Shown here one piece after another: positions 5,918 to 53,873 of a stretch of DNA of 64,000 nucleotides. Position 1 is the first letter of the stretch; every line of letters begins with the position of its first letter. Both the position numbers and the translations under genes were made by a program. The notes below the pieces were generated by a model. The model worked only from the letters and a program-made list of their open reading frames with translations, searched no databases and was not told the DNA's origin. The stretch is from positions 124,001-188,000 of the IMG/VR virus record IMGVR_UViG_3300028840_008160; one strand, written 5' to 3'.

Positions 5918-8827
5918 GTGTCGGCAAACAATTTAGATTACAGTTATGACGGGTCTGATATTTCCAGAACATTACAACCTGGTAATAGATCTTTTGATAC
6001 GGTTGTGATGCAACAGGGCAAGCCTTTGCTTGACTCTGAGTATAATCTATTATTTGACATTTTGTCAGGTAAGTCGCAAGACAATTTTACAGATCAAGCT
6101 CAAAGCGGATTCATGAAAGCTGACACGTATGAATTTGATGCTTTATGGGTTGATAAGTTTAAGATGGCACAAGATGTAGCGATTGTCAATGGTTGGAGGC
6201 TAGATGTTGTTCCTTTTGGAGATGAGTTTGTTCAATTGTCGCCTGCATCTGTAGGTTCAGGAAACCAACGATGGGATTTTGTTTTTCTTGAAGTATGGAA
6301 GACAATTTTAGTTGCCGGTTCAACTGAGCACAAACCATCGGCATCGCAAATTTATAGAGATGGAAATGTACAAAATACAACGGGAAATTATTCAGACGAT
6401 ATTCTGGATCCTGTTGTTACATTTGAGACGACTAGACGAGTACAAATTCAATATCGAATTCGAATTCAAGAAGATGTTGTGGCACCAACACATCAGAATG
6501 TAAATATATTTGATGCGTCAACATTTGCACAAGGTGGAGCTGCAATACCTATTGATCCATATACATTTTCAAATCAAGGTGCATCAATTGGTGATTATGG
6601 ATTATGGAAAGCTGGAAATGGAGATGCTGCTTCAAGAGCACAATTATTGACAGTTGATGGTCATGTTTATGCAATACCATTAGCGTTTGTGTTTAGACGA
6701 GCAATTGCACCGTACATTGATGAGGATACTGACGGACAGCAAGCATCTGCAACTGATATTACTTCTGGCATGTCTGATAGAATTGATGGATTATTTTATG
6801 ATTCTGTTGCACAAACAGATGTTATTGATTTGCGGCATCAGATAATAGCTGGTAATTATGTAGATTTTGATAAGATTCTTGAAAAAGCAATTCAGGATTT
6901 ATTGACTGGTGAAAATGATGTTAGAAGACCGGTTGCAATTCGATATGAAGCTATTAGTGATATTCCTATTACAGGCTATTCAATATTAAATACTGACAAT
7001 GTTTGTGATAAAACTAGATCTGTATGGAGTGATTTGCAGACCACAGTGCTTTCTAACACGATAAGAATAAATATTGGAAATACTGACACTGGTCAAGATT
7101 TCTATACTAGCAGAGCATCAGGTTTGTGGCAAATTGGCGACACAATTACTGTTAAGATACCTAATGGCGCACCTACCGGCACAATTATTCTTGGCACTGA
7201 TGATAGTAATCTAGCAACAAAACCATGGGTATATAGAAATAATGGAGCAACATTAATAGATGTTGCCGGCTCTTGGTCGGGTACAGGTACAGTACAGGCT
7301 GTATTTACAGTTGATGAAAATTTGTCAAATGAAGAATTTTGGATTGTTTACGATGTTCAATATCCAAATAATCAAGGCTTAACGTATGTTCCAGATCTAA
7401 TGTTGAAATTAGAATATTCAAATGCTGCAGCTTATCCAAATAATGTAACTGCGTACATGCCACATGCTGGTGTTGTAAGATCAGGAACTAATTTACTTAA
7501 CAATTCACTTGTTGTTGCTAGAAATTCTAAACAATTAAATTTTGAACATATTAGTACATTTAATAATTATGCAGCAAACTACATAGTTAACAAACGTAAT
7601 AAACAGTTACAGATATCGCCGATCATTTCATCAACTGATGATGTTGATAGCGGTACTAGATCAATGTATGTTAGTAATTATGATGCATCAACTAAAAGAC
7701 TATATTTACCGTTTCAAACTAGTAAGGTTTGGTTTGTTAGAGGCGTTTATGACGCTCAATCTGGTGGAAATGAACTTGTTACAGAAACATATTTGACTCA
7801 GAATCCTGCTTTAATATCTGGGGATGTTTTTCAGCATCCTTCAGCAAATTATTCATTTGCATTCATAACATCAGTTGTATATGATCCGCTTGGGGCAGCT
7901 ACAGAATTGGTTGTTAATAGCGGTGGTGATTATTGGCCTGTATATAGACAAAATTCATCTGGTGATCAGAATTTATTTGTACTAGTAGATAGTAACGGCG
8001 ACGTATATCATCCACCATCTGCTAATCCTGCTGATTATGTGATTAGTCATAGAAGTATTCCAACAAATAAAGTAAATGGTTACACTGTAAATAGTCCATC
8101 ACCGACTGATAATTGGTTGCAATTACGAGCTGATGTGACAACAATCATAAATGGGCAGACTTTGTGGGTAGATATTGATTTTATTGGTGAACCACATGAT
8201 GGTGCTCAAATAAAGATTGCTTATGAATATTTGCCATATCAAGGACTGGTAGAAAATACTGGAGCCGAACTGACAGCAAAACTTAAATCATTGGCCGGTT
8301 TTATTCATTCTGATGGTACAGGCAATGTAACAGCAAATATTGATCCAGTAAAATATCCTAGAACATTAGTGTCATATTTACCGACGCCAATCAATTTAGA
8401 ATTACAATTGACTGGCGATTCTATTGCTGGTGCAGGAACAATTGGGTTATTTAATTCGCAAAATTTATGTTATGCTAATGCAGAGATACTCGATTATTCT
8501 AACGATAATGAACAACCATTGAAAATTAATGACATCATAACTGCAAAGTTCAATGGTGGATTAGTTGCAATGGAGCGTGGTGGAAATGATGCAACAACTA
8601 GCAAATCATTAATGATACCAGATACAGTAGGATCTGATTATCGTCAGGCTGTTATTTTTGGTTTGGCTGTGGCAAAAATAGGAATTGCAGTTCAAAATGA
8701 ACTAGTTTTATTCGTGTGGACATTTACTGATAATGTTACTGAAAATTTGTTTTCATCGGGTGACGGTTTACATATTGGCGTGGACATGTACTTTATAAAG
8801 AAAAGACCATTGATTAAGTTTGATTGA
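5918..8827 (+). CDS. Large virion structural (tail/baseplate) protein
   Basis: 969 aa, beta-rich; N-terminal 'VVMQQGKPLLDSEYN' motif resembling myophage baseplate/tail proteins. Confidence 0.6.
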   Translation: MSANNLDYSYDGSDISRTLQPGNRSFDTVVMQQGKPLLDSEYNLLFDILSGKSQDNFTDQAQSGFMKADTYEFDALWVDKFKMAQDVAIVNGWRLDVVPFGDEFVQLSPASVGSGNQRWDFVFLEVWKTILVAGSTEHKPSASQIYRDGNVQNTTGNYSDDILDPVVTFETTRRVQIQYRIRIQEDVVAPTHQNVNIFDASTFAQGGAAIPIDPYTFSNQGASIGDYGLWKAGNGDAASRAQLLTVDGHVYAIPLAFVFRRAIAPYIDEDTDGQQASATDITSGMSDRIDGLFYDSVAQTDVIDLRHQIIAGNYVDFDKILEKAIQDLLTGENDVRRPVAIRYEAISDIPITGYSILNTDNVCDKTRSVWSDLQTTVLSNTIRINIGNTDTGQDFYTSRASGLWQIGDTITVKIPNGAPTGTIILGTDDSNLATKPWVYRNNGATLIDVAGSWSGTGTVQAVFTVDENLSNEEFWIVYDVQYPNNQGLTYVPDLMLKLEYSNAAAYPNNVTAYMPHAGVVRSGTNLLNNSLVVARNSKQLNFEHISTFNNYAANYIVNKRNKQLQISPIISSTDDVDSGTRSMYVSNYDASTKRLYLPFQTSKVWFVRGVYDAQSGGNELVTETYLTQNPALISGDVFQHPSANYSFAFITSVVYDPLGAATELVVNSGGDYWPVYRQNSSGDQNLFVLVDSNGDVYHPPSANPADYVISHRSIPTNKVNGYTVNSPSPTDNWLQLRADVTTIINGQTLWVDIDFIGEPHDGAQIKIAYEYLPYQGLVENTGAELTAKLKSLAGFIHSDGTGNVTANIDPVKYPRTLVSYLPTPINLELQLTGDSIAGAGTIGLFNSQNLCYANAEILDYSNDNEQPLKINDIITAKFNGGLVAMERGGNDATTSKSLMIPDTVGSDYRQAVIFGLAVAKIGIAVQNELVLFVWTFTDNVTENLFSSGDGLHIGVDMYFIKKRPLIKFD

Positions 8828-15657: not shown

Positions 15658-16947
15658 ATGATTGCTAGTTTGCAAGAACAAGCCAGACCATACAAATTGA
15701 TATTTACAGAAGATGCTGAAGAAATTAAAAAGTTGATGAACAAGACATATGATCGATTGAAAGAAACTGTTGAAGTTTCAGGATTTAGAAAAGGTCATGT
15801 GCCAAGGCAAGTTGCTGAAAAACAAAAATGGTTTAATAAATTTCAGATGTATCGACCCGTGTTTGATGAACTATATATTCGTGCAGTTAACGAATTAAAA
15901 ATAGATGTAGTTGATGCATTTGATTTTGAAGTTAAAGGCCCGTTTGAAGATACTTCACCAGTGACGATTCAAGCTACTGTATTTTTAATGCCTGTTGTAG
16001 AGTCATTTGACATTAATACTGTTAAAGTTCAAAAGAAAGTTACTAATGTAACAGAAGAAATGATTGATGATCAAATTAAGATTCATCTTGACAAATGTGC
16101 GACTTTTACAGCTGTTGATGATCCTGAGTATAAGATTAAAAACGGTGATGTGCTTATCATTGATTATGAAGGAAAAATAAATGGTAAGACATTTAAAGGT
16201 GGAACAGCAAAATTGTTTAAATACATTGTAGGGCAGACAAGATTTATTGAAGGTTTTGCTGAACAACTTTTGACATTTAAATCTGGTGAGTCTGGAGTTG
16301 TTAAAGTCAAATTTCCAGACAATTATTCGTCGACGGAATTACAAGGTAAAGATGCAGAGTTTAATGTGACTGTTCGCAAAGTTGATTCTAGAAGCAATGT
16401 AACGATTGAAGATCTTGCACGGCGTGATAATAAAACAGTACAACAATTTAGAGATGATATTAAAGCTAAACTCATAGTTGATCATGAAAGAATTAATGAA
16501 GAACAATTTAATAGTGATGTATTAGCTGCATGTGTGACAGCTGCTAGTATAGAACCTATTCCAACAAAGATGATTACATGGGAGATTGACAATGAGTGGC
16601 ATCAATTATTGTATCGTTTAAACATGACTGAAGAACAATATTTGAAAGATCGGCCAGAAAGTAAAACAGCATTTTATGCACAAAGACATATTAGAACAGA
16701 AAAAAAAGTACAAATAAAAGTTTTTCTAGATTACATTTGTGAACAACAAAAAATTACTGTTACTGAAGAAGAAGTTGCTGATTTTATTAAGGGTAGATCG
16801 GCAATGCTACAAAAATCTGATGAAGAACGTAAAGAAATATTTGAAAATTTGAAAAAGGAAGCAAATTATAAGGCTGCAGAATCAGCAGTGAAAAACGATA
16901 AGGCAACAGCATATCTTGTAGAATGTATTAGAGTAAAATTGCAATGA
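15658..16947 (+). CDS. tig: Trigger factor (ribosome-associated chaperone/PPIase)
   Basis: GFRKGHVP ribosome-binding signature, FKBP domain (IDYEG...FKGG...FIEGFAEQL...FPDNY), full three-domain length. Confidence 0.92.
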   Translation: MIASLQEQARPYKLIFTEDAEEIKKLMNKTYDRLKETVEVSGFRKGHVPRQVAEKQKWFNKFQMYRPVFDELYIRAVNELKIDVVDAFDFEVKGPFEDTSPVTIQATVFLMPVVESFDINTVKVQKKVTNVTEEMIDDQIKIHLDKCATFTAVDDPEYKIKNGDVLIIDYEGKINGKTFKGGTAKLFKYIVGQTRFIEGFAEQLLTFKSGESGVVKVKFPDNYSSTELQGKDAEFNVTVRKVDSRSNVTIEDLARRDNKTVQQFRDDIKAKLIVDHERINEEQFNSDVLAACVTAASIEPIPTKMITWEIDNEWHQLLYRLNMTEEQYLKDRPESKTAFYAQRHIRTEKKVQIKVFLDYICEQQKITVTEEEVADFIKGRSAMLQKSDEERKEIFENLKKEANYKAAESAVKNDKATAYLVECIRVKLQ

Positions 16948-17867: not shown

Positions 17868-19472
17868 ATGACAGAAGCAACAGCAATTTGTGCTGCAAGA
17901 AAGCATGTGCAGTCGAAAGACCAGACAAACGAGATAGCTTTGACCGGTGAAGCTATGATAGCTTTTATCTCTGGTGCTCAAACCAATGTTGGTAAGTCGA
18001 CGTTTTATAATTTGAAATCTGAGCAGCAACAGGCTCTAGTGGATCAGCATGCCCCAATGCTAAATAACGCAAGACCTTTTTATTCATTGATGATATTGCC
18101 GCAGGGCGTAAACGATGTTAACAAACAATTGATAGCATGGAACTTGATCGAGCATACACTTCCGGCAAACGAAGAGTATACAGATAGTGAAGGTTTGCGA
18201 CACAAACACTCACAGCAAACAAAATGGGAGAATGAACTCATATTACAAGCCTTTGAAAACATGTCAGTGCCACGAGTGTTTGATTTTATTGCTGATTTAC
18301 AAAAGCGCCGTGTGACAAAAAAGAGAGCGTTGTATTTGATTAGAGCATATTTACAACGTAATAGAAGCAAATGGCCATTGTGGGCTATCAAATATAGAAC
18401 AGATTTCAAACGAGCATTACGTCATGTTCATGTCAAGTTCAATAATAATGATCGTAATAACGATCCTGTGCTTATTACAATTTGGCGGTATTTAAAATAT
18501 AATGAACATGAAAATTGCCCACAGTTAATTCAAGATTATGTGGCTGTTCAAAATGGAGATCAGAGTAAATTAGCCAATTTACCATCGTCAGTAGCTGAAG
18601 GCTTCATGACAAAGTTTGGGCTATCGACTGATGAATTTTGGAAATTGTTTACTTCGGGTGGAGGTCAGTTTACACAAAAAGAAAAACGCACAAAAGCTGA
18701 ATCTGTCAGGAAAGCTGGTGCAAGTACTGGCTTTAATATGAAAAGTGCAAGATTGTTTGATTTGCTAGTTTATTTGAGATCACTTGATCAATTGCCAAAA
18801 CCTGAAGCAGAGATTAGAGAACTTTTGACAATGAAAGCAAAAGAAGTCGCAAAAACTTTGGCTTTTTCACTGGAAAAAGTTGGATTGATATTGGACACTT
18901 CAATCAGCATGAGTGGTACAAAAGATCAACCTTACCATCCTATGCTTAGGGGACTTGCAATAAGTTTGGTTTTAGAACAAGTATCTGAAGGTTTCAAGGA
19001 GTATAGGACAACTGAATCAAACCAGTTGTTTCCTGTACTTAAAAATCAATCAAATTATGCTGGAGCTTTGATAAAAGCTCTTAAAGATGGTTGTGAAACA
19101 ATAATTTTCGTTGGTGATGGATATGAGAATGCGCCTTTTGAAGGAATGTTGCATTCAATGCTTTATGCATTGAAGAAAAAGATTGATAAGAAGAATAAGA
19201 TTATGATTCTTCATTTTAATCCTGTATTTGCATCAGAAGCAATGGATGTACGAAGTTTATCATCTGTAGCTGCATCAATTGGAATAAGAACTGTTGATGG
19301 ATTAAATGAAGCAATGTTTTTGGCTGTCGCGAAGCATAAGCCAATGTTGGCTGTTGCAAAATTTGCTGGGCATTTACTTAAATTGCAAAAACCAAAGACT
19401 GCAGAATTAATGCCACAAGCAATTAGAAAAGCAATTGCAGACAAGAAGTTGTTGACTGATGAGAAAGTTTAG
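17868..19472 (+). CDS. Helical N-domain + C-terminal vWA protein (Ro60/TROVE-like architecture)
   Basis: MIDAS-like LDTSISMSG and GDGYEN after a long basic helical region; length similar to Ro60. Confidence 0.6.
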   Translation: MTEATAICAARKHVQSKDQTNEIALTGEAMIAFISGAQTNVGKSTFYNLKSEQQQALVDQHAPMLNNARPFYSLMILPQGVNDVNKQLIAWNLIEHTLPANEEYTDSEGLRHKHSQQTKWENELILQAFENMSVPRVFDFIADLQKRRVTKKRALYLIRAYLQRNRSKWPLWAIKYRTDFKRALRHVHVKFNNNDRNNDPVLITIWRYLKYNEHENCPQLIQDYVAVQNGDQSKLANLPSSVAEGFMTKFGLSTDEFWKLFTSGGGQFTQKEKRTKAESVRKAGASTGFNMKSARLFDLLVYLRSLDQLPKPEAEIRELLTMKAKEVAKTLAFSLEKVGLILDTSISMSGTKDQPYHPMLRGLAISLVLEQVSEGFKEYRTTESNQLFPVLKNQSNYAGALIKALKDGCETIIFVGDGYENAPFEGMLHSMLYALKKKIDKKNKIMILHFNPVFASEAMDVRSLSSVAASIGIRTVDGLNEAMFLAVAKHKPMLAVAKFAGHLLKLQKPKTAELMPQAIRKAIADKKLLTDEKV

Positions 19473-19725
19473 ATCACATAAAGAATTAGTTGATGTACTG
19501 AAAAAAGTACAGACTAGCATTTGTGCTTATAGATCTGCTGCTTTTTGTGATTGTAAATATGGTGTGCAAAATGTTGGAAAATCAACTGAATCTGGTAATG
19601 GTTGTCCTGAAGTTAGAGAAGTAATTGCATTGTTTTCTGTATTAACACCATTTGAATATGAACGGCTTACAAAACGAATTTATAAAGAAAAATTGAAAAA
19701 AGTGAGGGTGTCATGGCACAAATGA
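19459..19725 (+). CDS. Small Cys-rich protein
   Basis: CAY...CDCKYG...GCPE; overlaps both neighbours. Confidence 0.55.
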   Translation: MRKFRSHKELVDVLKKVQTSICAYRSAAFCDCKYGVQNVGKSTESGNGCPEVREVIALFSVLTPFEYERLTKRIYKEKLKKVRVSWHK

Positions 19726-20777
19726 TACAACTACAAGATTTGTTGAAAGGTTATGTTGTTGATCGTGAAAATATTCAAAGTGTCGGCAATATGACAATGA
19801 TTCCAATTATTGCTGATGTTGAGTTTACAAACGTTGCCGATGTAAACGATGTGACGTTGAAACGAGATCCAGCATATAATACATTAGAATTTCAGAATGC
19901 TAGTGGAAATATCGGCATTGCTTTGCAAGGATGGACATTGATTGATAACAATCAGCGTGCTCAGGATAGAACAATTCCCTATGCTCATTTGATTAAAGCA
20001 GCAAATGCTAAACTTATTCCTGCAAATTGTGTTCAAGCACATCAAGGCGGACATTTTGATGCGTCAAAGGTTGATCAGGAATCTTTTATGGTTTTGCCGC
20101 CATCATTGCGAGGGCTTGCTTTGAAGAAGTCAACATATAGTTCAGCTGACTATAGTGCATTATGGGAATCACTTGGTAAATGGGCAAAAGGTGTGGATTG
20201 CTATAGTAATGGATTACAACTTTTTTACAGCAAGTTTGAAGATAAACTTGAACAATTCGTTGCGCAGTTTGAGCCTGTTGAAAAGCAATTGGGCTCGATT
20301 GTATTGATTAATGGTAAATTAGTTGCTATTGATTTGATGCCAAAATATAAGAATTGGAATTCAGTCTGGCGAGCGATTATTCGTGATAGTTATGGTGCTG
20401 AAGCTGTTCGAGTAATCGAAAATGAAGGAGCTATCAACATTCATCCTTCGTTGGACCTTTCAAGTATTAACACGATTGATGATCTTGAAGAAGCATACGA
20501 AAACATGAAAAATGATTTTTATGATTCTTTGCAAAACATGCTCAATCAAACTTTGCAGATGCATGTTAGTAATACTATTCTTGATCAAGCTGGCGAATTG
20601 ACAATGATGAAGTTTGAAAGCGACGAGTATACTGGTCAAGGCGTCGTTCATGGCGATGAACATTTTGTTTATTTGTCTGTAGTGAATTCATCGTCTAAAC
20701 CAAGTGGAAGTCGACCACAGCAGTTTCAATCACTGCGGAGAACGCCTTATAGCGGTACGTCATTCAATTTTAGATAA
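19713..20777 (+). CDS. ARPP-family-like protein
   Basis: IQSVGNMTMIPI, AQDRT, ANCVQ, FVAQFE, LGSIVLING...DSYG resemble ARPP (DUF6569-like) domains, from recall. Confidence 0.55.
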   Translation: MAQMIQLQDLLKGYVVDRENIQSVGNMTMIPIIADVEFTNVADVNDVTLKRDPAYNTLEFQNASGNIGIALQGWTLIDNNQRAQDRTIPYAHLIKAANAKLIPANCVQAHQGGHFDASKVDQESFMVLPPSLRGLALKKSTYSSADYSALWESLGKWAKGVDCYSNGLQLFYSKFEDKLEQFVAQFEPVEKQLGSIVLINGKLVAIDLMPKYKNWNSVWRAIIRDSYGAEAVRVIENEGAINIHPSLDLSSINTIDDLEEAYENMKNDFYDSLQNMLNQTLQMHVSNTILDQAGELTMMKFESDEYTGQGVVHGDEHFVYLSVVNSSSKPSGSRPQQFQSLRRTPYSGTSFNFR

Positions 20778-20786
20778 GATGAAAAG

Positions 20787-20859
20787 CTACGATTTTCATC
20801 ATGACTAAAGCTTCAGGTAAAATACCTGTTAATCTTCGTGATTTTAAGGTATATTTATC
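20787..20859 (+). promoter_or_regulatory. Tandem promoter-like motifs heading tRNA operon 1
   Basis: ctacg-N9-atgacta (20787-20807) and aatcttcgtgattttaaggtatatttatc (20831-20859, repeated at 31409). Confidence 0.6.
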
Positions 20860-20875
20860 TTGCTCTTTGAAAGTA

Positions 20876-21012
20876 TTGAAAGTGGCGCTTTAGAGCAAGA
20901 CTTCAGAAAAAGTAGCTCAGTTGGTAGAGCGTCAGTTTATTCAACTGAATGTCATGGATTCAAATTCCATCTTTTTTACCTTAAAAGGTTTTGTTCACTT
21001 TCGCCCTTTCAA
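20876..21012 (+). ncRNA. Y-RNA-like RNA 1 (closing stem enclosing a tRNA-like cloverleaf)
   Basis: 5' TTGAAAGTGGCG..GAGCAAGAC pairs with 3' GTTTTGTTC..CGCCCTTTCAA; interior has D, anticodon-like and T arms. Confidence 0.65.
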
Positions 21013-21054
21013 TTCTTTTTATAAGTAGAATATAGGTAACGGAAGGAATATTAA

Positions 21055-21138
21055 ATGACTTCACTGACTTGTAATAGCAATTACTTTACAAGTAGTTTTT
21101 CCAATTACGGAAAAACTGATCAGTGGGGTTTTGCATAG
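21055..21138 (+). CDS. Attenuator leader peptide 1 (MTSLTCNSNYFTSSFSNYGKTDQWGFA)
   Basis: SD GGAAGGA; rich in Asn, AGY-Ser, Phe, Cys codons matching downstream tRNAs. Confidence 0.75.
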   Translation: MTSLTCNSNYFTSSFSNYGKTDQWGFA

Positions 21139-21203
21139 GTTTCTAACTCAAAGCAAAACGAAATTCAAAGCTCCACTGATCTAACGGTCGGTGGGGCTTT
21201 TTT
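21118..21203 (+). terminator. Attenuator 1 antiterminator/terminator
   Basis: 21118-21133 pairs with 21166-21181, which otherwise forms terminator 21167-21203. Confidence 0.8.
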
Positions 21204-21230
21204 AATGGGAGAATGTTAATGAAAATCAAT

Positions 21231-21613: not shown

Positions 21614-21701
21614 TGACGAGTAGCCTAGCGGCAAGGCAGTTGGCTGTTAACCAACCGTGACGCAAGTCCAATCGGGGGTTCGAATCCCTCCTCGTCAGCC
21701 A
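21614..21701 (+). tRNA. tRNA-Asn(GTT) with long variable arm
   Basis: gttgg-ctGTTaa-ccaac; 18-nt variable region; CCA. Confidence 0.85.
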
Positions 21702-23948: not shown

Positions 23949-24034
23949 GGGTGAGTAGCTCAGTTGGTCAGAGCGCCGGGCCGTTAACCCGGAGGCCCAT
24001 TGGGATTTCGTGGGTTCGAATCCCACCTTGCCCT
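23949..24034 (+). tRNA. tRNA-Asn(GTT)-like, C33 and long variable arm
   Basis: ccggg-ccGTTaa-cccgg; 17-nt variable region. Confidence 0.75.
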
Positions 24035-24066
24035 CTTTCTACGCAAATAGATATGATTACTATAAC

Positions 24067-26496
24067 ATGTTAGAGATTATAGGGAAACATTCAACTGCTA
24101 AAATAATGGTTGACGAAGTTGAAGATTCGTGCATGACACAAATCAAAAATTTCGTTGATCATCCTGCATTTACTAATCCAATCGCAATCATGCCAGATAC
24201 ACATGCCGGTATCGGATCTGTTATTGGGTTCACTATGAGGTTGACTAATAAAGTAATACCAAATGTTATTGGCGTTGACATTGGTTGTTTTATTAAGTCG
24301 ACAAAAGTTTCTTTAGCTGATGGTCGTGAGTTAACATTTGAACAATTGATCGAAGAACATGACAAAGGTTTGAGAAATTTTTGTTTTTCAAAAGATGACA
24401 AAGGCAATATTGTTATTGAAGAGATTTTTAGTCCTAGAAAAACAAGAACCGTGACTGAGTTAATTGAGATTACATTAGATAATGATGAAGTGATTACGTG
24501 TACTGTTGATCATATTTTTTATGATATTAATTGTCAAGAGGTTAAAGTTAGTGATATTAATAAAGGACAATCGCTTTATCCTTTATATATTGAAAAATCT
24601 GGAACAGTTCAAGATGAATTGTCAAAAATTAGTAAGAAGTTCAAATTACGCGATTATTTAGTCGTGTACAATCCCAAAACATATAAGTATGATTATATTC
24701 ATATTTTAGCTGATGATTATAATTTACGACATCATGTTTATGAAAAATCAAAATCAATTAGACATCACATTGATTTTGATAAACACAACAATAATCCGAC
24801 AAATATTACAAGAATGCAATGGAAAGATCATTTTGTTTTGCATTCAAAACATGCGAAGCAGCAAAATATTAAAGGGAAATCTGGTTGGTCAGCTGCTTGG
24901 AGAAAAAATAAAGATCGTTTTTCTGAGATGTCATCTAAAAAAATGAAAAAATTGCATGAAGATGCTTTGTTTAAAGAAAGATTGAAAATTAGAGCTAAAA
25001 CAAATAGAAAAAAATATCTAGAATCAGATGCTTTTTATGAAATGACTAGAGATGCAGGTAATAGAGGAAAAAAATATCTTGTTGCATATTCAAAATCAGA
25101 AAAAGGTAGGAACAAATCATCTGAGATTGGCAGGAATGTAGTAAATCAAAAATATCGTTGTTCTATTTGTAATAAGACAATAAAAAGTGCACGGGCATGC
25201 CCTAATCATTTTAACAGAAAAGATCATAAGCAATGTAATTTGAATATGTCTGATATGATATTGTTAAAAAATCACACAGTAAAAAGTATAAAGCGAATTA
25301 GTTGCGAGCCAACAGATGTGTATTGTTTTACGACTAGATTTAGTAATTTTGCATTAGCATCAGGTGTGTTCGTTCATAATTGTGGCATGTTGTCTATTAA
25401 CATTGGTAAAACTTTGCCGATATCGTTAGAGGATTTTGATACAAAAATTCGTCAGAGAATTCCGTTTGGGCAAGAAGTGCATGATGAAGCAGTTATTCGT
25501 ATGGATACGGACTTTCCATGGAAAATTGCAATAAGTAAAGCTGAAGCATTTGCTGCAGCGTTTCGCGAATCTTATAGAGATATCAGTGTTCCAAGATATT
25601 GTATGGACTGGTTTCTTGAAAAATGTGATACTATTGGTGGTGGAGCAAGACGAGTAATTAATTCATTAGGAACACTTGGCGGAGGAAATCATTTTATCGA
25701 AACTGGTGTTTCAACAACAGGTGGTGATTACTGGATTACTATACATTCTGGGTCAAGGAATTTTGGATTAAAAGTTTGTAATTACTGGCAAAGTATTGCA
25801 GCTAAGTCTTTCAAAAAAGAAAGAACTGGAAAGATTCAAGAGCAAATAGAAGAAGCAAAACGTACTCTTGAAGGAAAAGAGTTGTACGATAGAATTAAAG
25901 AAATTAAACGGTCAACATCAACAAGAGGTATTGACATAACACATCTTGAATGGTTGGAAAATGAAGTCGCTGATGGTTATTTATTTGATATGATATTTGC
26001 TCAATTGTATGCTAGTGTTAATAGATCATATATGGCTAAGTTGATTTGTGATGTACTTGGAGTAGAAATACAAGATTCGATTGAGTCTATTCATAACTTT
26101 ATAGATTTTAATGACTTCATCATTAGAAAAGGTGCTATTAGTTCGTATATTGGTGAACCAATGATTATACCATTTAATATGCGTGATGGTATACTTATTT
26201 GTGAAGGAAAATCGAACAAAGAATGGAATTATTCTGCGCCTCATGGTGCAGGCAGATTGATGAGCAGAACTCAAGCAAATAAACGAATTGATTTAGACAC
26301 ATTTAAGAGTCAAATGAACGGGATTTTTTCTACATCAGTGTGCAAGTCGACATTGGATGAAGCACCGGATGCTTATAAGAGTTCTACAATGATAGAGCAG
26401 GCTATTGAACCAACAGCTGCGATTTTAAACAGGATAAAACCAATTCATAATATGAAAGATTCAAGTGAGTTTCAATTTAGAAGAAAGAAGCAATAA
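24067..26496 (+). CDS. rtcB: RtcB RNA ligase containing an intein
   Basis: MPDTHAG, GVDIG|CG, GTLGGGNHF, HSGSR, HGAGR, DEAP.AYK; ATG 24067. Confidence 0.93.
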   Translation: MLEIIGKHSTAKIMVDEVEDSCMTQIKNFVDHPAFTNPIAIMPDTHAGIGSVIGFTMRLTNKVIPNVIGVDIGCFIKSTKVSLADGRELTFEQLIEEHDKGLRNFCFSKDDKGNIVIEEIFSPRKTRTVTELIEITLDNDEVITCTVDHIFYDINCQEVKVSDINKGQSLYPLYIEKSGTVQDELSKISKKFKLRDYLVVYNPKTYKYDYIHILADDYNLRHHVYEKSKSIRHHIDFDKHNNNPTNITRMQWKDHFVLHSKHAKQQNIKGKSGWSAAWRKNKDRFSEMSSKKMKKLHEDALFKERLKIRAKTNRKKYLESDAFYEMTRDAGNRGKKYLVAYSKSEKGRNKSSEIGRNVVNQKYRCSICNKTIKSARACPNHFNRKDHKQCNLNMSDMILLKNHTVKSIKRISCEPTDVYCFTTRFSNFALASGVFVHNCGMLSINIGKTLPISLEDFDTKIRQRIPFGQEVHDEAVIRMDTDFPWKIAISKAEAFAAAFRESYRDISVPRYCMDWFLEKCDTIGGGARRVINSLGTLGGGNHFIETGVSTTGGDYWITIHSGSRNFGLKVCNYWQSIAAKSFKKERTGKIQEQIEEAKRTLEGKELYDRIKEIKRSTSTRGIDITHLEWLENEVADGYLFDMIFAQLYASVNRSYMAKLICDVLGVEIQDSIESIHNFIDFNDFIIRKGAISSYIGEPMIIPFNMRDGILICEGKSNKEWNYSAPHGAGRLMSRTQANKRIDLDTFKSQMNGIFSTSVCKSTLDEAPDAYKSSTMIEQAIEPTAAILNRIKPIHNMKDSSEFQFRRKKQ
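24286..25380 (+). mobile_element. Intein with HNH endonuclease domain in RtcB
   Basis: Starts CFIKSTKV, ends GVFVHN before Cys+1; internal HHIDFDKHNNNPTNI. Confidence 0.9.
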
Positions 26497-27177: not shown

Positions 27178-27449
27178 ACTGTGTAATCTGCGAACGCGAG
27201 GTACCGGGTGAACGGTTTCTTGAAAAGCATCATTTGATTCCAAAATGTGGCAAGGGAAAAGACACTGTAAAAGTATGTGTTGATTGCGGTGATCAGATTC
27301 ATGTATTATTTACTGAAAAGGAACTACGAGACATATACAATACAGTTGAAAAGTTGAAATCAAATGAGCGAATGCAGAAGTGGATTAGATGGATTCAAAA
27401 AAGACCAACATTTGGTACTGTTTGTATGAAAAGAAAAAAGCGCCTATAG
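27174..27449 (+). CDS. Small HNH-family protein
   Basis: CVIC, HHLIPK, CVDC. Confidence 0.7.
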   Translation: MNCVICEREVPGERFLEKHHLIPKCGKGKDTVKVCVDCGDQIHVLFTEKELRDIYNTVEKLKSNERMQKWIRWIQKRPTFGTVCMKRKKRL

Positions 27450-27511
27450 TTCAGTGGTAGAACAACGGTCCCTAAAACCGTGTGTCGTGGGTTCAAATCC
27501 CTCTGGGCGCA
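27440..27511 (+). tRNA. Amber-suppressor-like tRNA (CTA)
   Basis: acggt-ccCTAaa-accgt; cloverleaf with one T-stem mismatch. Confidence 0.7.
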
Positions 27512-34799: not shown

Positions 34800-34885
34800 T
34801 TTAAGGAGGAATGAAATGAGAGTTAAGCTATGTCCTACACAAGTTTTTGATGGCCGAATATGCATGACAAATCAATGTTATGTAT

Positions 34886-34958
34886 AGGGGCATAGCTCAG
34901 GGGTTAGAGCGACGGCCTTAAGCCGTGTCTGTCGTGGGTTCAATTCCCACTGCCCTCA
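34886..34958 (+). tRNA. tRNA-like RNA with 5-nt anticodon loop (CTTAA)
   Basis: Normal D and T arms; acggc-cttaa-gccgt. Confidence 0.6.
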
Positions 34959-35008
34959 TTGTGAAAACTATGAAATCAATAGCATACAATTCTCTAAAAG
35001 GAGATTGT

Positions 35009-49511: not shown

Positions 49512-50903
49512 ATGTCAATGGAAAAACTCTACGAATCGCTTCACAGACGTTTACGTCCCGAAGATGTCGCAGAACTTATTTTAAAAGTTTTGCACCCTAA
49601 TCTGACACGTTCTGAACGTGATGAGCTTAATAAAATCGCTAAGCATTCATTAAAGCGCGGAATGTATTCGTTTACTTCAATGGCTCAAGATTTTCATTGT
49701 GCTATTGCACCTGATCGCCAAGTAAAGAAAGCAAAGGAGTTGTTTGAAACTGCATATAAAATTGATTGTACTGACCCTGAAGCAGTACTTGCGTTGATTC
49801 GTACTATTTCCAAAGAGATAGAGAAAACTGTCGGTAAAGGTGATTTCAAAGACGACAGAATGAATCGCGAAGCACGTAAATCACATGGACTTGACATTTC
49901 TCGTCGTCGGTATAACAAATTGTTCAGATTTCTTGGCAGATTTGAACAAAAAGTTGAGAAGTATGTGTTTGAAATGCGCAAAGAACGTGCTACACGCGTT
50001 TCAAAATCGGGTCTTGCGTTTAAAGTTTCCGAGAAAGATTTTATGAAGTCAAAAGAAGCAGCATGCTTTGTTGCTTATTTTACTGCAAGAAAGAATCGCA
50101 GAAGTGTATTTACTAATTCATCGCAAGATCGTGCATATGATAATTTGTCAAAACTTTTATTGAACAAATTTAAATCAAATCCTTGTCGAGCAGGTTGGCG
50201 AATTATAGCTAGAGTGATGCCTGATGCTGAAATTGTTGCAAAATTAACAAAGAAAGACAAGATGGAATTGTTTGCGACATGGATTGATGTTCTTAATGAC
50301 ATTGCTGATATGCTTAAGACTGTGTGGTTGGGTAGCCGGTTCAATCGAGAAACTATGGTTGTTTCTCGCGGTGATGATTCAAGCACATGGAATTCTTTGG
50401 CTGGCGCATGGAACACTGCACGTCAAGGATGGTTCAGTCTTGTTTATGCTCTTGGCATGGATAAGATGCTTGAAACTGTTTGTTTTGGTAAGGTTATGAG
50501 ATTGATGGCTGCTGATGTTGTTCGTTGGCATCAGTCAAGTGGTGGTCAACTTGAGCCTGATACTTTGGTATGGGCCACATTACCAGCTCCATGGGAAGTC
50601 TTTTCGGGCGAAAAAGAATGTTCAAAGCAAATAGTTGAAGGTGTTTGCAAAAAGAATAATGTTGATCCTGTTCGAAAGAATTGGATAATGCCAATTAAGT
50701 CAAGATCAGCTGTTGAATTTAAACCGACGCCTGAACTTGTTCATGGTGTAACAGTGTCGCATCCAGGGTTGGCTAATATTCTTAAGAAAGCTGGATGGTT
50801 TTCTGGAAAGCAAGCTGTTCCAGTTTCAGAAGCAGTTGTAGTTGATCATGATGAACATGGAGCAGTTGTAGGAGCAAACTTTGCAAATGCGTCGTCGATA
50901 TAG
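49512..50903 (+). CDS. Basic helical protein of unknown function
   Basis: SD AGAGG; promoter-like motif at 49472; stop codon lies inside the following tRNA-like gene. Confidence 0.75.
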   Translation: MSMEKLYESLHRRLRPEDVAELILKVLHPNLTRSERDELNKIAKHSLKRGMYSFTSMAQDFHCAIAPDRQVKKAKELFETAYKIDCTDPEAVLALIRTISKEIEKTVGKGDFKDDRMNREARKSHGLDISRRRYNKLFRFLGRFEQKVEKYVFEMRKERATRVSKSGLAFKVSEKDFMKSKEAACFVAYFTARKNRRSVFTNSSQDRAYDNLSKLLLNKFKSNPCRAGWRIIARVMPDAEIVAKLTKKDKMELFATWIDVLNDIADMLKTVWLGSRFNRETMVVSRGDDSSTWNSLAGAWNTARQGWFSLVYALGMDKMLETVCFGKVMRLMAADVVRWHQSSGGQLEPDTLVWATLPAPWEVFSGEKECSKQIVEGVCKKNNVDPVRKNWIMPIKSRSAVEFKPTPELVHGVTVSHPGLANILKKAGWFSGKQAVPVSEAVVVDHDEHGAVVGANFANASSI

Positions 50904-50966
50904 CTCAGTGGTAGAGCGCACGGCTCTTGGACCGTGTGGACGCTGGTTCGAGCCCAGCTGTCGACG
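50894..50966 (+). tRNA. tRNA-like RNA with 8-nt anticodon loop (CTCTTGGA)
   Basis: cacgg-ctcttgga-ccgtg; normal D and T arms. Confidence 0.6.
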
Positions 50967-50975
50967 CTATACTAT

Positions 50976-53232: not shown

Positions 53233-53873
53233 GGGGGTGTACTGGTTATCGACGTGTGGTGTGAACTATGAGTTGCATGTCGAGGATAGTCGTTGGCCTC
53301 GTTAATCATCGGCTAAAACCATAACTGCCAAAGCTAATAACTTTGCGGTTGCTTTCGCTCGTCAGTTCGCTGACAATGTACGCTTCGGCGTCATGGCGGG
53401 AGCGCTCCAAGCTGCCTAATTAAAGGCAGCAAAGAAACAGGACGACGCCGCTGATTCTGTTTCTCAGCTAGCGGCTGGATTCTTAAGTGGGTTCGGCTTA
53501 AGAGTTAAGAAATACAGACCGATTCGTGGGGAATAGTTGGTCATCTACCTACCCGGCGTCTTATTAAAAGTTGACTAAACATGTAGTAACTTGTACGGAT
53601 TGTCACACGGACAGGGGTTCGATTAATTTGGTCGCTTTAGTTGGTAACAACTATTGAAAAGTGGGTGAATTCAAGGAACTCTAAATCAAGTAATTGACAT
53701 GACAACCTTGAGCCAAGTCGGTTGAAGAGCAAATGTAAACCGAAAGGTGCAGAGACTAAGAGGTGAGAAGCTCAATCAATAATCCTCTATTAGCGCCCAT
53801 CATCCAATACCATGGATGAAGAAATAGTCCACACCATCATGAAAATGATGGATTATGTGTCCCCTCACCTCCA
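53233..53873 (+). ncRNA. ssrA: tmRNA interrupted by group I intron
   Basis: GGGGGTG/CACCTCC-A acceptor with G3.U70; tag frame 53327-53419 ending ALQAA. Confidence 0.92.
53624..53859 (+). mobile_element. Group I intron in tmRNA T-loop (no ORF)
   Basis: GAATTCAAGGAA, ACCTTGAGCCAAG, GCAGAGACTA, AATAGTCC, terminal G; removal restores AGGGG-TTCGATT-CCCCT. Confidence 0.88.

Follow-up and report, generated by a model that had tools for sequence, protein, structure and literature searches.

Genes for Y RNAs lie beside those for Ro60, frequently as tandem copies, and a tRNA-like module is present in many of these RNAs (PMC4201824, PMC12135203). In the bacterial YrlA described by Chen et al., the 5′ strand holds the motif GNCGAAN0-1G, the gene lies beside rsr, and the tRNA-like module is permuted: it runs from the T arm through a closed acceptor-like hairpin to the D arm, and the RNA ends exit at the position of the anticodon stem (PMC4201824). 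Among phages, phiLo encodes two Y-like RNAs upstream of its Ro60 gene (PMC12135203). Here we compare three known particles, the D. radiodurans Rsr–Yrn1–PNPase complex, the S. Typhimurium rsr-yrlBA-rtcBA operon and the Thermus phage phiLo Ro60 with Yrl1/Yrl2, with a locus in a 64,000-nucleotide (nt) stretch of viral DNA, hereafter the window (bases 124001–188000 of the 329.8-kb IMG/VR virus record IMGVR_UViG_3300028840_008160). The locus encodes a 534-residue ring protein, an ARPP family protein and a tRNA-like RNA embedded in a long stem, which probably form one RNA–protein system related in design to Ro60–Y RNA particles. This trio recurs across many huge phages and some relatives of Streptomyces, and no account of it appears in the papers and family libraries that we searched.

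The ring protein (17868–19472 of the window; the whole locus lies on the plus strand) had initially been annotated, from sequence, as a helical protein with a vWA domain resembling Ro60. Structure prediction bears this out. An AlphaFold 2 model built on 31 relatives (predicted local distance difference test score (pLDDT) 82.6, predicted template modelling score 0.80) has an N-terminal ring of helical repeats, approximately residues 27–330, closed by a C-terminal vWA domain. When this model was compared with the Protein Data Bank (PDB) by Foldseek, the top twelve matches were all Ro60 or TROVE proteins, aligned across nearly the full length. VIA-align matched the model to phiLo Ro60 (9kop) over 400 residues spanning both ring and vWA (Z 18.1, root-mean-square deviation 3.9 Å), to Xenopus and human Ro60 (Z 14.4–14.7) and to Deinococcus Rsr (Z 13.5). 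These Ro60 matches extend over 400–417 residues; every non-Ro60 match is restricted to the vWA part. Matches in the AlphaFold Database are headed by unnamed proteins, and the named ones include TROVE-domain proteins, Ro60 and telomerase protein 1 (TEP1). The MIDAS motif (for metal-ion-dependent adhesion site) of the vWA domain, D343-x-S345-x-S347 with D417, is invariant in the 31 relatives. On the predicted model, a vWA domain whose metal site is intact closes the Ro60-type ring of the 534-residue protein. Sequence searches give no hint of this kinship. The protein has no Pfam match at E ≤ 10 apart from noise, single-sequence and profile searches returned no match in PHROGs, NCBIfam, PADLOC or the PDB sequences, and the family profile retrieved no Ro60 among the PDB sequences at E ≤ 10. 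The family itself comprises 49 close relatives, and a profile search at E ≤ 0.001 collects 640 representative clusters.

The ring gene has a fixed genomic partner. The 354-residue, enzyme-like protein encoded at 19713–20777, initially described as ARPP-like, matches the Pfam family ARPP-1 (PF20208) with an E-value of 2.4e-25 (89.9 bits, cut-off 27). Across a survey of 9 IMG/VR loci, 49 metagenome loci and 12 cellular-genome loci (the phage and metagenome loci are labelled L002–L060), nearly every locus with enough sequence has the ring and ARPP genes side by side, in one order or the other, and in one representative of 828 residues (P0169) a ring/vWA protein is fused to an ARPP-2 domain. ARPP is the one invariant partner of the ring protein, an importance that the initial annotation had underrated. 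Seven columns are invariant among 34 ARPP sequences (Y55, Q84, C106, Q111, G113, R133 and E187). Conserved Cys and Gln residues led Iyer et al. to propose in 2022 that ARPP is an enzyme acting on ribose moieties (PMC9503650), and the conservation of C106, Q84 and Q111 here agrees with the residues behind that proposal. The ARPP model is well defined (pLDDT 90), and UTRA/chorismate-lyase-type domains recur in its fold search as a weak lead (Z 3–3.7). The contexts reported for ARPP are ARG, rhodanese-phosphatase, HIRAN, WYL and deacetylase; a Ro60-like ring is absent from the contexts in that family-defining paper (PMC9503650), and no link between ARPP and Ro60 was found in the literature searched. 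Compared with the ARG-centred ADP-ribose systems, the proteins share the Pfam ARPP-1 match and the family-defining Cys and Gln, and differ in being paired with, or fused to, a Ro60-fold ring protein and accompanied by RNA units (PMC9503650).

The third component lies downstream of the ARPP gene. The ring gene, a small gene that follows it and the ARPP gene look like one operon, since their starts and stops overlap, and the RNA unit (approximately 20864–21022) probably sits in the 3′ part of the operon transcript. As initially described, the ends of this RNA form a long bulged stem around a tRNA-like cloverleaf; the stem reaches slightly past position 21012, where the initial annotation had ended it. 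In the minimum-free-energy fold, the lower stem pairs 20869–20887 with 21002–21019 and the upper stem pairs 20893–20903 with 20986–20996, with an internal loop between them (20888–20892 on the 5′ side, 20997–21001 on the 3′ side). The 5′ strand of the lower stem, GGAAGUGGC-like, is the most conserved flank, and its 3′ strand is GCCCUUUC-like; the 5′ strand of the upper stem leads into a conserved UUCAG junction. The two 5′ strands belong to helices 1 and 2 of the alignment of relatives described below (A4), and covariation supports both 3′ strands. Folded as 186 nt, the unit gives z = -4.8, and none of 200 shuffles folds as well. A related phage locus, L011, whose ring protein is 84% identical, conserves the RNA and carries two indels, of 1 nt and 2 nt, separated by ~95 nt; these rule out a 54-codon open reading frame (ORF) overlapping the RNA as coding. 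A covariance model of the window-clade units (R2) matches 20872–21017 with 137 bits, its sole strong full-length match in the 329.8-kb genome. The stem is more than chance, given this unique match and the compensatory changes in relatives. The exact pattern of the 3′ stem had no match in IMG/VR, and a nucleotide search of the phage collection returned only a 61-nt tRNA-like match.

RNA units built on one plan accompany the pair elsewhere. In a distant clade, in which the ring protein is 22–26% identical, two to four tandem units of ~100–150 nt lie directly 5′ of the ring gene on the same strand, with a hairpin and the ribosome-binding site of that gene coming after the last unit. Each consists of a lower helix, an internal loop, an upper helix, the UUCAG junction and a variable apex, and the loop is near-invariant, with GGGAACU or GAGAACU on its 5′ side and CCU-N-CC on its 3′ side. 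In an alignment of 20 short units of this clade (A3), 12 of 14 pairs have changed on both sides, and 88% of cells are paired; shuffles give 67%, with none of 500 attaining the observed value, and slid partners give 39–55%. The window clade follows the same plan in a different sequence (GGAAGUGGC..., CUUAAA, UUCAGA): the conserved 5′ strand is GGAAGUGGC...CUUAAA there and CGGGAACUG in the distant clade. Alignment A4 holds nine units from seven loci (the window, L011, L003 (two), L004, L021 (two), L022 and L027), with double changes in six of the nine pairs of helix 1 and five of the nine of helix 2. A4 and the distant clade both conserve the UUCAG junction, and at its apex a unit has either a short loop or an entire tRNA-like cloverleaf. 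Searching with R2 added full-length units in L015 (two), L018 (3 nt after ARPP), L006 and many distant-clade loci, at 61–104 bits; with ordinary tRNAs, matches are confined to the centre of the model and reach at most 70 bits. An Rfam scan of the window and 12 related loci returned tRNA as the only match to a stem unit, and no YrlA in the 12 loci.

Counted by hand, a unit occurs no farther than ~2.2 kb from the pair in at least 29 of 37 evaluable non-redundant loci, and most loci have one to four. Pair-adjacent units are present in all 11 cellular loci that include upstream DNA, and R1, the model of the distant-clade units, matches the same upstream place in each of these 11, with individually weak E-values of 6e-6 to 0.25. 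The chromosomes of Embleya, Yinghuangia and Streptodolium encode both proteins; a GGGAACUG...CAG unit sits just upstream of the two genes, and the surrounding 4 kb are free of tRNA genes. The RNA accompanies the ring–ARPP pair and not tRNA arrays, because these Streptomycetaceae chromosomes carry the motif and both genes without a nearby tRNA. Across the phage loci, flank pairing is also stronger for tRNAs within 700 nt of the pair than for distant ones (median -25 versus -14 kcal/mol; Mann–Whitney p = 4.6e-4, only an indicative value given that these loci are not independent of one another). In L003, L004, L007 and L009 a tRNA-Met gene stands beside the pair; these genes were considered as RNA partners and dropped, as they have no flank stem, and L007 has a short unit just after its tRNA-Met.

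The apex of the window unit is a tRNA-shaped domain (20906–20978; Rfam tRNA model positions 1–71, 64 bits), called by ARAGORN and Rfam (RF00005, 64 bits) as a tRNA at 20906–20980. Judged by the D-loop and T-loop elements of RF00005, its cloverleaf has a canonical D arm, T arm and variable loop, and the body shows U8, G18–G19, a G15–C48 pair and the T loop UUCAAAU. The acceptor stem of 7 bp comprises a G-U, five A-U pairs and one G-C and is A/U-rich, as initially described; its G+C content is the lowest of any acceptor stem among the 56 tRNAs of the window. The anticodon loop UUAUUCA places A34 in a non-Arg anticodon and C at position 37, the only pyrimidine there among these 56 tRNAs. Between the window and L011 the anticodon differs (AUU and AAU, respectively), and compensatory changes occur in the anticodon and T stems (U-A to C-G, A-U to G-C), which together argue that the shape of the domain is under selection and the anticodon is not. 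The domain lacks the marks of a decoding tRNA, namely a purine at position 37, a bacterial-type anticodon and an anticodon kept between orthologues. Because of A34, C37, the A/U acceptor stem and the changed anticodon in L011, it is, on sequence grounds, unlikely to decode. Embedded tRNAs of other loci are of several kinds: Ile-GAU, Pro-UGG and His-GUG look fully functional, and others have 6-nt anticodon loops or class II (Ser/Leu) anticodons on short class I bodies. Two loop types, UGA on a short class I body and ACG, recur in tRNA-carrying units of different distant-clade phages (L044 430–504, L046 4607–4682, L047 4683–4756, L051 697–769 and L048 438–510, with further examples at L036 1312–1379, L044 783–857 and L051 558–633), an indication that in some apical modules a particular anticodon loop is under selection, to serve for example as a decoy or bait.

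How closely, then, does the locus resemble the known particles? It shares with bacterial and phage Ro60–Y RNA particles a helical-repeat ring closed by a vWA domain with a MIDAS, and adjacent structured small RNAs with an end stem, an internal loop and an apex that can mimic tRNA (PMC4201824, PMC12135203). In the window, RtcB also lies in the same genome region. It differs in that the ring has no detectable sequence similarity to Ro60, ARPP is the fixed partner, the window RNA lacks GNCGAA and the linkage to RtcB is not conserved. Relative to YrlA, the RNA likewise has a stem formed by its ends and a tRNA-like module with canonical D and T arms near a ring gene; in contrast, its cloverleaf is complete and in normal order, an anticodon arm is present, and the stem continues from the acceptor stem, an orientation closer to that of D. 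radiodurans Yrn1 as described by Chen et al. (PMC4201824). The general features of Y RNAs are present: the 5′ and 3′ ends join in a conserved stem interrupted by an internal loop, the apical module is of the effector type, and the gene lies beside the ring gene, often in tandem. The initial reading of this RNA as Y-RNA-like therefore stands as far as the end-paired stem, internal loop, apical tRNA-like module, covariation and position beside the ring gene are concerned, and falls short of membership in YrlA, whose covariance model does not recognize it. The general plan is common and the sequence-family tests failed, so we regard the locus as working like a Ro60–Y RNA system without being a member of the TROVE or YrlA sequence families.

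By analogy with Ro60, which takes up Y RNA on its ring surface and misfolded RNA ends in its central hole, the ring would bind the conserved RNA stem and internal loop on its surface. The apical tRNA-like module may then act as an adaptor that brings tRNA-handling factors or tRNA-like substrates to the particle; alternatively, it may shield the RNA from exonucleases. ARPP could be the effector, working on RNA ends or on sugar moieties that the ring delivers, and the place of PNPase in the Deinococcus Ro60–Y RNA–PNPase complex offers an analogue for its proposed place. In phages, such a particle might keep the tRNA pool under quality control, repair it or protect it while infection proceeds, a role that appears likely because most phage copies sit inside large tRNA arrays. 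We put much less confidence in any specific chemistry than in the association of the three components. Tentatively, and with some doubt, we further propose that they represent a widespread, unannotated three-part pathway for RNA quality control or repair, in which a Ro60-fold ring works with ARPP as catalytic effector on RNA ends or ribose adducts and with modular Y-like RNAs that can hold a whole tRNA in their apical loop; huge phages would rely on this pathway to guard their tRNA pools, and Streptomycetaceae would also make use of it.

Several observations weigh against a Ro60-like ring–ARPP–RNA system. The Pfam TROVE model (PF05731) has no match in the whole phage genome at E ≤ 1, and the same model detected both positive controls, the D. 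radiodurans and B. thetaiotaomicron genomes; the ring protein has the Ro60 architecture but is outside the sequence definition of the TROVE family. We know of no activity for the ARPP family, and the ARPP fold search found no solved structural relative (best VIA-align Z 3.9). On the RNA side, the YrlA model (RF02553) reaches 13.3 bits on the window RNA against a gathering score of 69 (E 8.7), and the Ro60-binding motif GNCGAA is missing, with no CGAA anywhere in 20864–21022. R1 has no match in the window or its clade; the case for homology between the two RNA clades is built on their shared architecture, the common UUCAG junction and the cross-matches of R2. No unit lies near the pair in L002, L005, L010, L023, L025 and L028. 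The only unit in the L002 phage is 40 kb from the pair (L081 1490–1650; G001:C1:120012–120145), ~580 nt 5′ of a tRNA-Phe, which fits a trans-acting RNA. The window has the same order, with a unit followed by tRNA-Phe. Finally, the functional look of some embedded tRNAs leaves room for the RNA to be a substrate or a precursor and not a cofactor.

The last point can be taken further: the units may be special tRNA precursors, with the ring protein and ARPP as dedicated maturation or quality-control factors, and the RNA may be a substrate that RNase P and RNase Z cut out to yield a tRNA for use, in place of a stable cofactor. Normal-looking tRNAs do occupy several units (Ile-GAU, Pro-UGG, Arg-UCU, His-GUG, Gly-UCC and Lys-CUU), the window domain has RNase P determinants in its 7-bp acceptor stem and discriminator A, and M. 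smegmatis YrlA is cut by RNase P (PMC4201824). The L002 phage adds a window-clade unit that keeps company with the tRNA array and not with the pair. We nonetheless consider this explanation unlikely, as many units are free of tRNA yet keep their stem (A3), and the Streptomycetaceae loci hold only such units. In the window, A34, C37 and an anticodon unlike that of its 84%-identical relative are poorly suited to a tRNA in use, and the 6-nt anticodon loops and the class II anticodons on class I bodies of other units point the same way.

A further explanation, which we regard as improbable, places the units in cis: they would be regulatory mimics of the true substrate, through which the ring protein binds its own mRNA and autoregulates, rather than trans-acting small RNAs. 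It would account for the distant-clade and cellular units, which stand directly 5′ of the ring gene on the same strand, with the hairpin and ribosome-binding site after the last unit, although known Y RNAs also lie upstream of rsr genes (PMC4201824, PMC12135203). The window argues against it because its unit lies downstream of the operon. The unit is likewise downstream of ARPP in L011 and L018, between both genes in L003 and L004 and 40 kb away in the L002 phage, and two to four tandem copies with embedded tRNA bodies would be unexpected for a leader. It is slightly more improbable still that the element is just an ordinary or decaying tRNA gene, with the flank stem a processing or termination signal and its place beside the pair a by-product of a shared tRNA region, for although it is the first of 56 tRNA genes and scores 64 bits as a tRNA, the stems co-vary and the junction motif is common to loci with 22–84% protein identity, the element alone among the tRNAs of the genome matches R2 strongly over the full length, units stand beside the pair in chromosomes and in contigs without tRNA arrays, and flank pairing is stronger near the pair than elsewhere.

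If the proposed ring–ARPP–RNA system is real, the Ro60–Y RNA principle extends to a large family, of 640 representative clusters, that sequence searches have missed, and ARPP gains a concrete RNA context. Y-like scaffolds would then be able to hold complete tRNAs, a point of relevance to why bacterial Y RNAs are tRNA mimics, and there would be a lead on how huge phages maintain arrays of at least 50 tRNAs. The case lends itself well to experiment, since the trio is present in culturable strains of Embleya, Yinghuangia and Streptodolium.

The setting of the locus is the tRNA region of a huge phage, as indicated by 56 tRNA genes, all on one strand, together with a transfer-messenger RNA (tmRNA) and a group I intron in the window. 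The sequencing runs listed as containing the stretch are two DNA runs. The locus stands at the head of this array, and its stem-embedded tRNA is the first of the 56. Between the ring and ARPP genes, at 19459–19725, the small third gene of the operon encodes an 88-residue protein with four Cys (C22, C30, C32 and C49, read from the translation). Family-library searches gave no match for it, and tblastn found relatives only in L011 (72%) and L017 (42%), so that it looks like an accessory gene of the nearest relatives. Just beyond the RNA unit, a second structured non-coding element (21036–21212, plus strand; fold z = -6.0) is ~92% identical to L011 over 146 nt and ends in a strong terminator hairpin of 12–15 bp (~21167–21205), just before two tRNA-Phe genes. 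This element was found in L011 and not in the other loci examined, and is therefore not established as a member of the RNA family; it could form the 3′ end of that same transcript, or else be a small RNA in its own right, and its membership in the system is uncertain. A segment upstream of the terminator (CUGAUCAGUGGGG) could pair with the 5′ half of the terminator as a candidate anti-terminator alternative.

The rtcB gene placed 3 kb away by the initial annotation is present, as an RtcB RNA ligase interrupted by an intein (24010–26496, plus strand; PF01139 E 2.6e-53, Intein_splicing 2e-9 at residues 100–457). We reject RtcB as a conserved member of the system, because linkage is absent or distant in related records: it lies 26–30 kb from the pair in two of five related phage records and was undetected in the other three, and among the related loci it is near the pair only in L036–L038. 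Two tRNAs of 87–88 nt, at 21614–21701 and 23949–24035, have the anticodon GTT (Asn) with a long variable arm, which is atypical for Asn; the mechanical start of the RtcB ORF falls within the second.

Elsewhere in the array, two tRNAs have suppressor-type anticodons, CTA (amber) and TTA (ochre), and another has an 8-nt anticodon loop (cttg); these three (27440–27511, 34885–34959 and 50894–50967) hint at possible stop-codon or frameshift recoding in the phage. The tmRNA (53241–53625, 102.7 bits) overlaps the group I intron (53610–53851, 94 bits) by 16 nt, and its gene may be split by the intron close to the 3′ end. Outside the window, a 5.7-kb metagenome contig (L048) carries three CRISPR-DR4 repeats at 36–183 on the minus strand, just 5′ of its RNA units and ring gene, and in Embleya (L074) a DUF4031 protein (6513–7118) comes after the ARPP gene, with a Uma2-family endonuclease ahead of the RNA unit. 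A chaperone stands beside the ring–ARPP system in two unrelated settings: the window encodes a full trigger-factor homologue at 15658–16947, two genes 5′ of the ring gene, and a GroEL-type chaperonin lies just 5′ of the pair in Embleya (L074 1242–2867) and in an unclassified Streptomycetaceae bacterium (L073 1859–3484).

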